Notes under the pieces: model-generated
What the model was told of the DNA's origin: nothing
The model's input: only the letters and a program-made list of their open reading frames with translations
Database searches by the model: none
In this document: piece after piece, positions 5,397-60,863 of the stretch
How positions within the stretch are numbered: the first letter of the stretch is position 1
Layout: every line of letters begins with the position of its first letter
Made by a program: the position numbers and the translations under genes
Origin: Phaeosaccion multiseriatum
Taxonomy: Eukaryota > Protista > Ochrophyta, other classes
Assembly: GCA_965112735.1 (NCBI GenBank)
Contig: OZ218960.1
Coordinates: 1,860,001-1,924,000, forward strand
Direction of reading: 5' to 3'
DNA: 64,000 nucleotides

Positions 5397-6317
<921 letters not shown>

Positions 6318-14543: not shown

Positions 14544-14648
14544 TTAGGCCCTCGGCCTATTTATATGAGGCCCTCGGCCTATTTATATGCCGCCGCCTAG
14601 GCGGCCTAGGGCAGACGCCAACTGCCGACAACTAGGCGGACGGTGGGA

Positions 14649-14935
14649 TCGGCCCTGGAAGAGGTTATCAGATTACTGATTACGGCCGGCGCAGCCGGCC
14701 TGATTACTGATTACTGCCGGCGCCAGCCGGCCTGATTACTGATTATGGCGCCAGCCGGGCCTGATTACTGATTATGGCCGGCGCCAGCCGGGTCTGATTA
14801 CTGATTATGACCGGCGCCAGCCGGCCTGATTACTGATTATGACGGGCGCTAGCCGGCCTGATTACTGATTATTGGCGCCAGCCGGCCTGATTACTGATTA
14901 TGGTCGGCGAATACTGTAACCTCTTCCAGGGCCGA
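14649..14935. mobile_element. MITE copy A (287 bp), 19-bp perfect TIR, 6-bp TSD GTGGGA
   Basis: TIRs TCGGCCCTGGAAGAGGTTA (14649-14667) and TAACCTCTTCCAGGGCCGA (14917-14935). GTGGGA at 14643-14648 and 14936-14941. Interior is 8x GATTACTGATTA separated by GGCCGGCGCCAGCCGGCC-like units. Confidence 0.92.
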
Positions 14936-15718
14936 GTGGGAGTGCCCAGAGTGCAAAGAGTAGTCGGTTTTAAGCAAATGTATTGCATGGGATTGGAAGT
15001 GAGGAGTAGAGTAGACTTGGTTCGTGTTGTGTCTTTCCGCCTCGCTGGCCCTACGAGGAGTGCAGGCCTACAGGTGTGCTGCTACTGCTACCCACTCGCT
15101 GGGCGGCACCACGCACGCGCCCACGGTCACCGGGAGGCTGCCTAGACACAGGCAGGCTAGAGCCGGCCTAGGACTGAAAAGTGAGCGGCCTAGAGCGGCC
15201 GAGGCCGCCGGCCTAGGCCTATATCGGCCGAAGGCGGAGCGGCCTAGCGGCCTAGAGCAAAAACCGCTAGGCGTGCGTGGGGCTGAAAAATAGTCGGCGT
15301 AAAAAAAAATTCACGGGCGCGTCACCAGTGCCACAAAAGAAAAATAAGAAAGTTCAGGAGAAAAAGAAGAAAACAGAAAAAAAAGGGGGCCCTTCAAAAC
15401 TCAAAACTCCTTGGCTCCGCGCCATAAATAATACATAGAGCCTGACGCAGTCCTTCACTCTAGGTAGGTACTGCTGTGATCAGCAGGCGTGTGTGCTTTG
15501 GCGTCAGCGTGTGTGTTGCTGCAAGTTGCGGGTGAGAGATAAAAGGGGAAGAATTTACCCTGTTTCCCTGCGCTCCGCATTTTTCAATCCCCAGAAGCTT
15601 CCCCCCCTGCAAACGTAAACGCGAAGCTCGCTTCCACAACGGCCAGAGACTGAACCGAATGGTCTGTTCTGCGTGTGGGGCATGAAGAGAGTGTGGGGCT
15701 GTCTTCTTCATAAGCAGC

Positions 15719-22466: not shown

Positions 22467-23468
22467 ATGGAGAAAGAGGAGGATAGGGGAGTTGGGATCT
22501 ATGCCTGTGCCGAGGTGGTTCCATCATTTGAGGCTTGTAAGAAGGCGTTGGCACAGGGTATGGGGGAGGTGCTGGCCAAAATCATGAGCGATATTGGCGA
22601 AGGTCATGACGCATTCATCGCGACGGTGAGCAAGGAGTGGAAGTACTACTACAGACGTGCCCATCGCAGCAAGAAAACATCGGAGAAGAGTGTGGTGGAG
22701 TCCGCCGAGCGCTTGCACTGGGCGAAGCGCTTCGGCTGTAAACTGACCGTGGAGACTTTTGTGGCCGCCGCCAGGCACGGGGACGTGACGCTGTGTAAGA
22801 TTCTCCACGGCAAGGGTTGTGAATGGAATCAGAGGGTGTGTTACGCAGCTGCAGAGAATGAGAAGCATGGCCTGAGCATCCTCCCGTGGCTGCGATCCGA
22901 AGATCTTCCTGGGAAGGAGAGGTGTCCGTGGGATGAAGACATGTGCGGCTGGGCTGGACAAGAAGGGAGACTGGAGATACTGGATTGGCTGCTGTCGGAG
23001 CAAGGAAATGCTCCATTTCTCAGCTCCTGCTGGAGCGAGGTTTGTCAGGGGGGGCACATTCCCGTCTTGAAATACCTGCTGAATCATGCCCGCACGAGAG
23101 CGTTGCTTGAAGAGAATAGAGACGGAGAATGGCGTAAGGGGGCCATGATGGCTGCGATGCTGGGGCACCTTGGGGCACTCAAGTTCCTCCACGCCAATGC
23201 CTACCACCTCTGCGATTGGGATGAGGGAGTCTGCGAGACTGCAGCCGAGTCCAAGAGTCTCGCAATGCTCAAGTGGCTCCGGTCCGAGGCGGTGCTGTGC
23301 CCATGGGACGAAATGTCGTGCCCGCAGGTCGTCCTGACCAAATGGAAGGGCAGCCTGTCTGGCAGAGGCAGACTGGGACAATTCAGTTTTCATATGGACG
23401 CTGAGACCTTCGAGAAGACCAAGCAGTGGGTGCATCGGAATGGCCACCCCTGCAACTGCCACGACTGA
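22467..23468 (+). CDS. Intronless CPWD-type ankyrin-repeat protein with degenerate F-box-like N-terminus
   Basis: 333-aa ORF with repeats AA..G.LEIL.WL...CPWDE (RCPWDEDMC, LCDWDEGVC, LCPWDEMSC) and N-terminal VLAKIMSDIGEGHDAFIATVSKEWK. Confidence 0.85.
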   Translation: MEKEEDRGVGIYACAEVVPSFEACKKALAQGMGEVLAKIMSDIGEGHDAFIATVSKEWKYYYRRAHRSKKTSEKSVVESAERLHWAKRFGCKLTVETFVAAARHGDVTLCKILHGKGCEWNQRVCYAAAENEKHGLSILPWLRSEDLPGKERCPWDEDMCGWAGQEGRLEILDWLLSEQGNAPFLSSCWSEVCQGGHIPVLKYLLNHARTRALLEENRDGEWRKGAMMAAMLGHLGALKFLHANAYHLCDWDEGVCETAAESKSLAMLKWLRSEAVLCPWDEMSCPQVVLTKWKGSLSGRGRLGQFSFHMDAETFEKTKQWVHRNGHPCNCHD

Positions 23469-23886: not shown

Positions 23887-24087
23887 TCGGCCCCCCGCGA
23901 GGTTTCTCTGGCTCCTGGCTTCGGGCTTCTGGCCGCAGGCCAGCGCTGGCTTCTCGGCTTTCGGCCGTAGGCCGCCTCTGGCTTCTGGGTTGCCACTCTT
24001 TCCCAGTGGTGACTGGCTTCCGCTGGTCGCAGCCCAGCCCCTGGCTTCTCGGCTATCGGGGGCCAGGGAAGCCTCGCCTGGGGCCGA
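23887..24087. mobile_element. MITE copy B (201 bp), 20-bp imperfect TIR, 6-bp TSD TGATTT
   Basis: TCGGCCCCCCGCGAGGTTTC / GAAGCCTCGCCTGGGGCCGA. TGATTT at 23881-23886 and 24088-24093. Interior GGCTTC arrays are homologous (inverted) to copy C. Confidence 0.9.
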
Positions 24088-24371
24088 TGATTTGGTTGTT
24101 GTTTTTTTAAATTTTTTATATATATATACATATTATATTTATATATATATGAGATGGAAGATCATGAGGCCCTAAGATGCAGCGCCGCAAGCAGCTTCAC
24201 ACCTCTTGCTCGCAGTGCGAGTTTCGGGTGGGACGCCGCACGCTTCACCGGCAAGCGCCCGGGCAGAGCGAGGGTCAAGGGTCACGAGTGAGCAACGTGG
24301 TCCTTCCCCTGTAGAGAGGGCATGGGCTGGTAGGTGAGTTGGGGAGGGTTTCAACCCCTGATACACTATCA

Positions 24372-24610
24372 TCGGCCCCTGACATGCTTCTGAGACAGGC
24401 CAGCCCAGAAGCAGGAAGCAGGCCGGCCGGCGCCGGCCAGAAGCAGGAAGCAGCCTTGGCCCTCGTCATTGCCTTATTACATGGCTTTCCCCCAGAACCT
24501 CGAACCTGCCTGGCCGGCTGGCGCCGGCCAGAAGCAGGAAGCAGGGTCACCTCAGAAGCATGTTCGCCCACATTCTCTCGGAAAGCGCGCCGGCTGGCGC
24601 CGGCGATGCG
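24372..24610. mobile_element. Truncated MITE copy D of the same TCGGCC family
   Basis: Left end TCGGCCCCTGACATGCTTCTGAG. Inner IR ACATGCTTCTGAG (24382-94) / CTCAGAAGCATGT (24551-63). CCGGCTGGCGCCGGCC core shared with copy A. Outer right end and TSD not found. Confidence 0.65.
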
Positions 24611-24756
24611 GAAGGTTTCCCCCTTACTTTTACACTTTACTTTTTGGCGGGGATTAATTCTTCCCCCTCTCCCCCCCCTAGTGGAGTTGGGGCACCTGCT
24701 CTATCGAACTCGAGGAGCAGAGAGAAGCGCGGGGAGAAGGAGGGGAAGGTGTTCTC

Positions 24757-60653: not shown

Positions 60654-60863
60654 TCGGCTCCCCGCAGGGCTTCTCTGCCCCCCCCGATAAGCAGAAGCCT
60701 GAGGCGGCCTGTGGCCGAAAGCAACAAGCCCGGGGTTGGCCTGCGGCCAGAAGCCTGCATAATTTCTCCCCCCCCCTGAGCCCCCCTGAGAAGCCTGAAG
60801 CCCAGACCGCTGGCCTGCGGCGCAGAAGCCCGAAGCCTGAAAGGCAAGCCTGCGGGGGGCCGA
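60654..60863. mobile_element. MITE copy C (210 bp), imperfect TIR, 6-bp TSD CCTCCT
   Basis: TCGGCTCCCCGCAGGGCTT / AAGCCTGCGGGGGGCCGA. CCTCCT at 60648-60653 and 60864-60869. Interior cagaagcctgaggcggcctgtggccgaaagc..ggcctgcggccagaagcc matches the reverse complement of copy B. Confidence 0.9.

Follow-up and report, generated by a model that had tools for sequence, protein, structure and literature searches.

Positions 24372-24610 of the window (the whole 64,000-nt stretch of DNA analysed here) raise the question of how one group of small transposons could keep a constant tip and a constant GC palindrome and still exchange the doubled motif that separates the palindromes, and of how many transposases such a pattern calls for. 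The preliminary description took the whole stretch as a single element, copy D, whose interior motif was echoed in the inner end of its TIR, and proposed that several transposase specificities had co-evolved with these motifs in one lineage. We find that the stretch is a damaged member of one non-autonomous cut-and-paste transposon (MITE) group, in which A, B, C, D and at least six further types (A2, A3, E, F, G and H1/H2) make up about ten subfamilies. The constant tip and the variable inner TIR word that matches an interior word extend beyond the first four copies to E, F, G, H1 and H2, and the pattern as a whole probably reflects a single long lineage that cross-mobilises most subfamilies or has relatives of which they are relics.

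The window is ~57% GC, filled with microsatellites, and belongs to a 67-Mb assembly of 22 contigs. When 24340-24660 was used as a query against this whole genome, the matched portion was query positions 33-224 only, and copy D stops at 24563 instead of running to 24610 (Table 1). Full-length subfamily D copies elsewhere in the genome terminate ...CTCAGAAGCATGTCAGGGGCCGA and have a 23-bp TIR and 6-bp TSDs; because they end in this way, the window copy, whose terminus TCGGCCCCTGACATGCTTCTGAG begins at 24372, can be said to lack its final 10 bases (CAGGGGCCGA), and it also has no TSD. The ends of the genomic D copies likewise rule out a right end at 24610 (GGCGA). The remainder, 24564-24610, aligns to subfamily H from position 19 to position 70 and has lost the outermost 18 nt of the H TIR. 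Judged by these alignments, the flagged copy is a D+H composite, a truncated D element joined to an H fragment. Its surroundings include an ankyrin-repeat ORF at 22467-23465 (+; Pfam Ank_2, E = 1e-7), downstream of which lie MITEs B and D/H, and an AT-rich (TA)n tract at 24100-24150 that adjoins the same two elements. Farther away, a polyubiquitin gene at 5400-6314 (-) consists of four 228-bp units of 97% identity (Pfam ubiquitin, E = 6e-131).

Table 1. Positions and composition of the elements in the window, of the related subfamilies and of the long element.
Feature	Position	Strand	Composition or basis
MITE subfamily D copy, 3'-truncated	24372-24563	+	genome matches to query 33-224
Left TIR of D	24372-24394	+	outer 13 nt TCGGCCCCTGACA, then heptamer TGCTTCT, then GAG; sequence
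Inverted 13-nt partner of D left TIR	24551-24563		CTCAGAAGCATGT; inverted-pair search
D linker doublet 1	24408-24421	+	GAAGCAG GAAGCAG, reverse complement of TGCTTCC TGCTTCT
GC palindrome unit 1	24421-24438	unstranded	motif search
D linker doublet 2	24440-24453	+	
E-type relic doublet	24493-24508	+	CAGAACCTCGAACCTG, adjoining central core ATCATTGCCTTATTACATGGCTTT
GC palindrome unit 2	24512-24529	unstranded	motif search
D linker doublet 3	24531-24544	+	
Degenerate subfamily H fragment	24564-24610	+	alignment with five H left ends
Third palindrome, inside H fragment	24588-24605		
MITE A, intact	14649-14935	+	19-bp TIR; TSD GTGGGA; ~7.5 units of palindrome plus TGATTACTGATTAT
MITE B, intact	23887-24087	+	TSD TGATTT; palindrome GGCCGCAGGCC, GGCTTC doublets
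MITE C, intact	60654-60863	+	TSD CCTCCT; TIR word GGCTTCT recurs 4 times inside
Subfamily A			heptamer doublet TGATTAC/TGATTAT
Subfamily D			heptamer doublet TGCTTCC/TGCTTCT
Subfamily E			TIR TCGGCCCCTGACAAGGTTCTG; heptamer doublet (linker) AGGTTCC AGGTTCT
Subfamily F			TIR ...ACATGGTTCTG; heptamer doublet (linker) TGGTTCC TGGTTCT
Subfamily H1			TIR TCGACCCCTGACACGCTATC; heptamer doublet (linker) CGCTATC CGCTATC
Subfamily H2			TIR TCGACCCCTGACGTGCTATY; heptamer doublet (linker) TGCTATC TGCTATC
Subfamily G			TIR TCGGCTCCAGACTGGCCTAGAAGCC; GGCCTAG doublets, own palindrome
Subfamily A2			TIR TCGACCCTGGACAAGAT; A-type linkers
Subfamily A3			TIR TCGGCCCTGGACAAGGTTA; A-type linkers
Long-element pair	C3:502946-511341		
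Long-element pair	C3:601310-609698		
Long-element pair	C4:4892380-4900752		
Long-element pair	C8:349057-357417		
Long-element pair	C8:3447400-3455755		
Long-element pair	C13:327255-335647		
Long-element pair	C16:2003857-2012206		

The further subfamilies were identified within 90 genomic loci that were retrieved. All share TCGR termini and 6-bp target duplications; the constant outer TCGGCC first noted is thus accurate as to a constant tip, but the window copies begin TCGGCC or TCGGCT and the wider family is described by TCGR. TIRs measure 19-25 bp in A, B, C, D, E, G and H, and 40 elements have exact 6-bp TSDs together with matching termini; a target-site logo built from these 40 gave no consensus. 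The elements are short (186-299 bp), non-coding and built of repeats, and have the TIRs, fixed TSD length and homogeneous copies by which MITEs are recognised. B and C are both intact in the window and multi-copy in the genome. First-look candidates number 405 for subfamily A and 262 for subfamily D; the best 30 of the A candidates are 96-100% identical, almost all with perfect 6-bp TSDs, and A is the youngest and most abundant subfamily. An ORF scan of the 90 loci returned recurrent ORFs only over the MITEs themselves, and no transposase relic was seen in them.

Several repeats accompany these elements. A 1427-bp G-type element (locus L054, 1709-3135), with identical 25-bp TIRs and the TSD AGAGGG, holds nested A2 copies and a microsatellite and has no real coding capacity. 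GGCCTAG-rich repeat fragments, kin either to subfamily G or to another family, flank copy A (window 14546-14620 and 15130-15270) and an H copy (L080:890-1006), and GTCAAA-type short repeats lie upstream of copy A, as they do around A copies in L010 and L025. Long (GGGA)n/(CCCT)n microsatellites border every one of the four A2-type copies seen (L002:2300-2340, L053:750-950, L054:2076-2872 and L065 near 2596), with ~800 bp of (CCCT)n lying between two A2 copies in L054. This adjacency could reflect a target preference or the growth of microsatellites at an element's edge.

The interiors of the elements consist of units of 32-33 bp (28-29 bp with a shortened palindrome), each comprising a GC palindrome and a direct doublet of heptamers. 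The palindrome GGCCGGCGCCAGCCGGCC, allowing up to three mismatches, matches the window 8 times against 0.18 expected, and these matches are confined to copy A and to 24421-24605, which bears out the proposal that D and A share it; in D it has the form GGCCGGC-NNNN-GCCGGCC, at 24421 and 24512, in alternation with the doublets. The distinction first drawn between the linkers of these two copies also holds, in that the GAAGCAG doublet GAAGCAGGAAGCAG has three exact matches in the window (24408, 24440 and 24531), all within 24408-24544, and copy A carries the GATTACT-type TGATTACTGATTAT. B and C do possess the GGCTTC doublets ascribed to them, but not the shared palindrome, theirs being the different and shorter GGCCGCAGGCC. 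With the asymmetric GCCA loop of the palindrome as the guide to orientation, the linkers of A, D, E, F, H1 and H2 all resolve into aligned heptamer doublets. Linkers and loop keep a single orientation throughout each element, and the inverted part amounts to 19-25 nt only. In E, H1, H2 and A3, the direct-array end has its first palindrome starting 34-37 nt in from the tip; at the same end of copy A the first palindrome has a 1-nt deletion and starts ~36 nt in.

The palindrome is conserved above the heptamer (14/14 positions between A and H2), and this raises the possibility that it, as a dimer site or an extruded hairpin, is the reiterated recognition element, with the heptamers as tolerated spacers. 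The core CCGGCGCCAGCCGG shows no change among A, D, E, F, H1, H2 and the long element described below, the heptamers of this set varying, and recognition of this kind would explain how one transposase could move both A and H2. We nonetheless regard it as distinctly improbable, given that B, C and G have other palindromes (GGCCGCAGGCC, GGGGGCCGCAGGYCCCC) and that the recurrence of the heptamer inside both TIRs would be left unexplained. Single-strand folding is stronger than in shuffled sequences (z -7.6 for A, -2.5 for D), which is compatible either with recognition of the palindrome or with neutral homogenisation of the array. A metagenome scan for two palindromes 12-20 nt apart gave one match only, L091:3797-3845 (17 nt apart), which lies in a bacterial-looking intergenic region without a TIR and was rejected as unrelated.

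In the plan shared by the ends, a ~13-nt tip precedes a heptamer that takes up positions 14-20 of each TIR, and the array comes next. The TIR word is TGCTTCT in D, AGGTTCT in E, TGGTTCT in F, CGCTATC in H1 (CACTATC in many copies) and TGCTATC/T in H2, and in these five subfamilies it equals the second heptamer of the linker. When TIR 7-mers were compared with the interior, against 300 shuffles of the TIR window, the match was exact over 7-8 nt in C, D, E, G, H and H2, with p 0.007-0.023 for exact recurrence in C, D, E, G and H; the echo in H2 and F was judged by eye. The interior of G holds 20 further occurrences of its TIR word, GGCCTAG. The statement that each element echoes its linker in its TIR is therefore correct for these subfamilies but not for A, A2, A3 and B, where the echo is not significant: no TIR 7-mer of A, A3 or B recurs exactly in the interior, A2 has one exact interior match (p 0.10), and allowing one mismatch gives p 0.07 for A, 0.80 for A3 and 0.28 for B. 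What had been read as A's echo is the first linker copy, which directly follows the 19-bp TIR at one end only; the best match within the TIR itself is 6/7. The echo rule holds in most subfamilies and fails to cover every one.

In an independent sample drawn genome-wide, the degenerate TIR pattern CCCCTRACAWGSTTCTG had 287 matches and the doublet pattern CCWGSTTCCWGSTTCTGG had 283, with none for either in the reversed control, and the first 100 of the former and the first 90 of the latter were paired by coordinates. Among the matches listed, D-type TIRs accompany D linkers in 24 loci (plus one tie) and E-type TIRs accompany E linkers in 19, with no clear cross between D and E, a pairing that supports this part of the preliminary description. 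Of the F-type TIRs among these matches, those of 5 loci occur with F linkers and those of 3 loci with D linkers; in 18 of the 19 two-ended loci listed, the two ends have TIRs of one class; and the doublets are concordant in 82/90 cases and hybrid in 8/90. The Fisher p of 1e-11 for the D/E pairing counts copies that share descent, not independent events, and the pairing counts describe subfamily structure, the copies being kin. Countable independent co-changes are few, namely E/F (A to T), F/D (G to C) and H1/H2 (C to T), to which are added the larger steps that separate the A, D-E-F, H, B-C and G groups.

The strict separation of D from E in both TIR and linkers, among the matches listed, is what would be expected if each motif class had its own transposase, several transposase/binding-site pairs co-evolving around the tip as a shared cleavage site, and there is a precedent in the Galileo subfamilies, whose THAP domains show weak or no cross-binding (PMC3688188). 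The intermediates, that is, the F TIRs with D linkers in 3 loci and the hybrid doublets, stand against such an arrangement and suggest descent in small steps. All nine two-ended D copies examined read DDD(F)-core-EE DD(DD): an E-type doublet occupies the same central position in 9/9, adjoining the shared core wherever that core is intact (6/9), and the outer units and both TIRs are D-type. The number of array units differs among D copies. Because an E-type doublet survives within D copies and an F intermediate exists, the sequences point to a stepwise origin of D from E by way of F.

The same data must be weighed against neutral concerted evolution, by which the array would have grown by slippage from a TIR-proximal heptamer and palindrome, unequal exchange homogenising the units and intrastrand pairing or repair homogenising both TIRs, so that the match would carry no binding function. 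In E, A and H2 one end has its array directly behind the TIR heptamer, unit number varies among copies, hybrid doublets are present, and folding as strong as that of A would favour both slippage and hairpin repair. In addition, the H TIR occurs as ACGCGC, ACACGC, ACGCAC, ACACAC, ACGTGC and ACATGC, and these variants, like the H1/H2 step, look like CpG decay (CpG to TpG/CpA, from ACGCGC); the H1-to-H2 change could be parallel mutation without selection, and the decay series hints at cytosine methylation of the elements. However, the far TIR is inverted and separated by a spacer from the array, yet has the word of the array; D, E and F are set apart by transversions at two positions, which recur in at least six heptamers and both TIRs; and the plan, with its 34-37-nt offset, is conserved across subfamilies and recurs in the long element. 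On balance we consider it unlikely that neutral turnover accounts for the match.

The long element was recognised through the H2 TIR. The complete list of matches to TCGACCCCTGACGTGCTATY numbers 59, and all 14 of those that end ...TATT (...GCTATT) form seven plus/minus pairs 8350-8396 bp apart. Of the long element itself, the sequence read is the first 82 bp of one tip, that of the copy at C8:349057 (at the end of locus L079), the remainder being the coordinates of the TIR pairs. This tip runs TCGACCCCTGACG TGCTATT A TGCTATC TGCTATC G, palindrome, CG, TGCTATC TGCTATT, G, palindrome, and thus has the same array of TIR, heptamer and palindrome as the MITEs. Since the 82-bp tip follows the MITE plan, the array architecture is native to the long element and the H2 MITEs are its miniatures. 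The 8.4-kb element is the only candidate enzyme-carrying element found, and its transposase is putative. Pfam PF21787 (P-transposase) had no match in the genome and was also silent in control genomes; PF02902 (Peptidase_C48) and PF01436 (NHL) had 16 and 9 genome matches, respectively, none of them in the seven 8.4-kb intervals.

The A2, D/E/F and H TIR patterns gave no pair of comparable length among the first 100 matches listed of each, which make up about a fifth to a third of the 287-496 matches per pattern, taken in contig order. This scope leaves room for the idea of one transposase per motif class, as partners of the non-H2 patterns may have been missed beyond the first 100. Nevertheless, the one long lineage found, in seven copies, has the H2 TIR throughout, and subfamily A, with at least 30 copies 96-100% identical, has no long A-ended element among those found. 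Moreover, the heptamer of this youngest subfamily, TGATTAC, differs from TGCTATC of the long element, the two being identical at only 4/7 positions. We therefore judge the existence of several co-evolving transposases, as first proposed, to be quite improbable; a single transposase type, named in the preliminary description as the outcome that would speak against it, fits the evidence so far, partners having been sought among the matches listed.

Insertions of the group also lie close to one another. Two of the 30 retrieved B-family loci sit ~1.4 kb to the left of two different 8.4-kb copies (C3:601310 and C8:349057), the B copies being at L071:1442-1905 and L079:1442-1901 and the 8.4-kb tips starting at L071:3125 and L079:3061; the DNA between B copy and tip is unrelated in the two loci, and ~0.01 such loci would be expected by chance. 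This proximity may reflect insertion near existing family members. The terminus of another subfamily occurs within ~1.5 kb of the queried element in 16/87 loci (18%; L002-L090), against a rough expectation of 6-7%, and nested or abutting elements are found in L010, L026 (where an H2 MITE has an A copy nested in its right end), L054 and the window at 23887-24610.

We propose that the heptamers are reiterated docking sites for one transposase and that array and TIR change in concert, a reading to which we assign a probability of about 0.5. The heptamers are probable docking sites because a TIR motif that is reiterated subterminally is, by analogy, the classical signature of multi-site end recognition, as binding experiments have demonstrated for Galileo (PMC3688188), Hermes (PMC10368747) and Emigrant with Lemi1 (PMC1636448). 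They would be bound by a sequence-specific DNA-binding part of the transposase putatively encoded by the 8.4-kb element, with one site inside each TIR and many more in phase in the interior, ~three helical turns apart, so that several protein subunits could load on each end; palindrome and tip would be the constant parts. Subfamilies would then diverge as one-base changes in the heptamer became established across the array and in both TIRs, by array turnover and TIR homogenisation, under the constraint of one protein that reads all sites, and the result would be a graded series, E, then F, then D, instead of one transposase per motif. Several points weigh against this proposal: the mismatch of the A heptamer means either that the heptamer is not the main determinant of specificity or that a partner has been missed; the better conserved palindrome could be the real binding site; the echo lacks significance in A, A2, A3 and B; the H1-to-H2 change may be parallel CpG decay; and the three Pfam searches had no match in the seven 8.4-kb intervals.

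A more radical possibility, to which we give little credence, is that a single unusual P-like transposase mobilises ~ten subfamilies whose heptamers differ at up to 3-4 of 7 positions, recognition residing in the constant tip and the phased GC palindromes (by DNA shape or an extruded hairpin), and the heptamer being a freely evolving module kept identical in TIR and array by a copying mechanism. If true, the group would provide a natural series for how a eukaryotic transposase reads multi-site ends, and possibly a tethering signal that draws new insertions beside old ones.

Transposases of many superfamilies need more than the TIR, and the reiterated sites that they use are usually degenerate and hard to define. 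A single genome here provides a clean natural series, with the same tip and palindrome and at least seven heptamer variants, most of them copied into both TIRs and every unit, with intermediates preserved and one young candidate autonomous element of the same plan. Which module is read by the enzyme, how much mismatch is tolerated in cross-mobilisation, and how array and TIR evolve jointly are now testable, and elements of this group can be annotated in this genome by a TCGR tip, a 6-bp TSD and a first palindrome 34-37 nt from the tip. The literature search, of partial coverage, found no published description of such elements.

Among known transposons, TSDs of 6 bp occur in the superfamilies IS3EU and Dada and in some hAT elements. 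The TSD is 7 bp in Galileo and 8 bp in Hermes, and Emigrant, of the Tc1/pogo group, has a TA target. In the Drosophila P element the TIRs are 31 bp long and the TSD is 8 bp; its transposase binds inward of the tip, and each end has one THAP site besides 11-bp enhancers. The 6-bp TSD described here departs from the 7-8 bp of the P-element superfamily.

Galileo, a Drosophila member of that superfamily, resembles the present group in its internally repetitive ends and in having MITE-like derivatives. Its THAP sites lie in tandem repeats of the TIRs, and its subfamilies, between which cross-binding is weak, combine a conserved ~40-bp tip with a differing binding region (PMC3688188). In Galileo, however, the repeats belong to long inverted TIRs (up to 1.2 kb) and the proximal site is ~70 bp inside the end, outside the conserved tip, whereas here an array of one direction runs through the whole element in 32-33-bp units with a GC palindrome, the motif lies inside a short TIR, and the TSD is 6 bp. 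The long inverted subrepeat TIRs of foldback-like elements (FB, Galileo) are likewise lacking, only 19-25 nt being inverted. Hermes (hAT), although of a different superfamily, also has a short motif reiterated subterminally and inside the TIR: its BED zinc-finger motif recurs 14-17 times towards the tips, with one copy inside the right TIR, and several protomers bind one end (PMC10368747). The Hermes repeats, in contrast, are irregularly spaced, occur in both orientations and form neither a palindrome module nor a regular tandem array. Emigrant/Lemi1 (pogo-like, Arabidopsis) is a further case of a MITE with a motif in both TIR and subterminal repeats; Lemi1 proteins bind the two cooperatively, and interior motifs were considered by its authors to limit cross-mobilisation (PMC1636448). 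Emigrant, unlike the present group, lacks tandem units of palindrome plus doublet, and no series of subfamilies with exchanged motifs has been described for it. The multi-site principle is thus already known, and the novelty of the elements described here lies in a regular unit of palindrome plus doublet that keeps one direction from end to end, in a TSD of 6 bp and in a series of subfamilies with swapped motifs.
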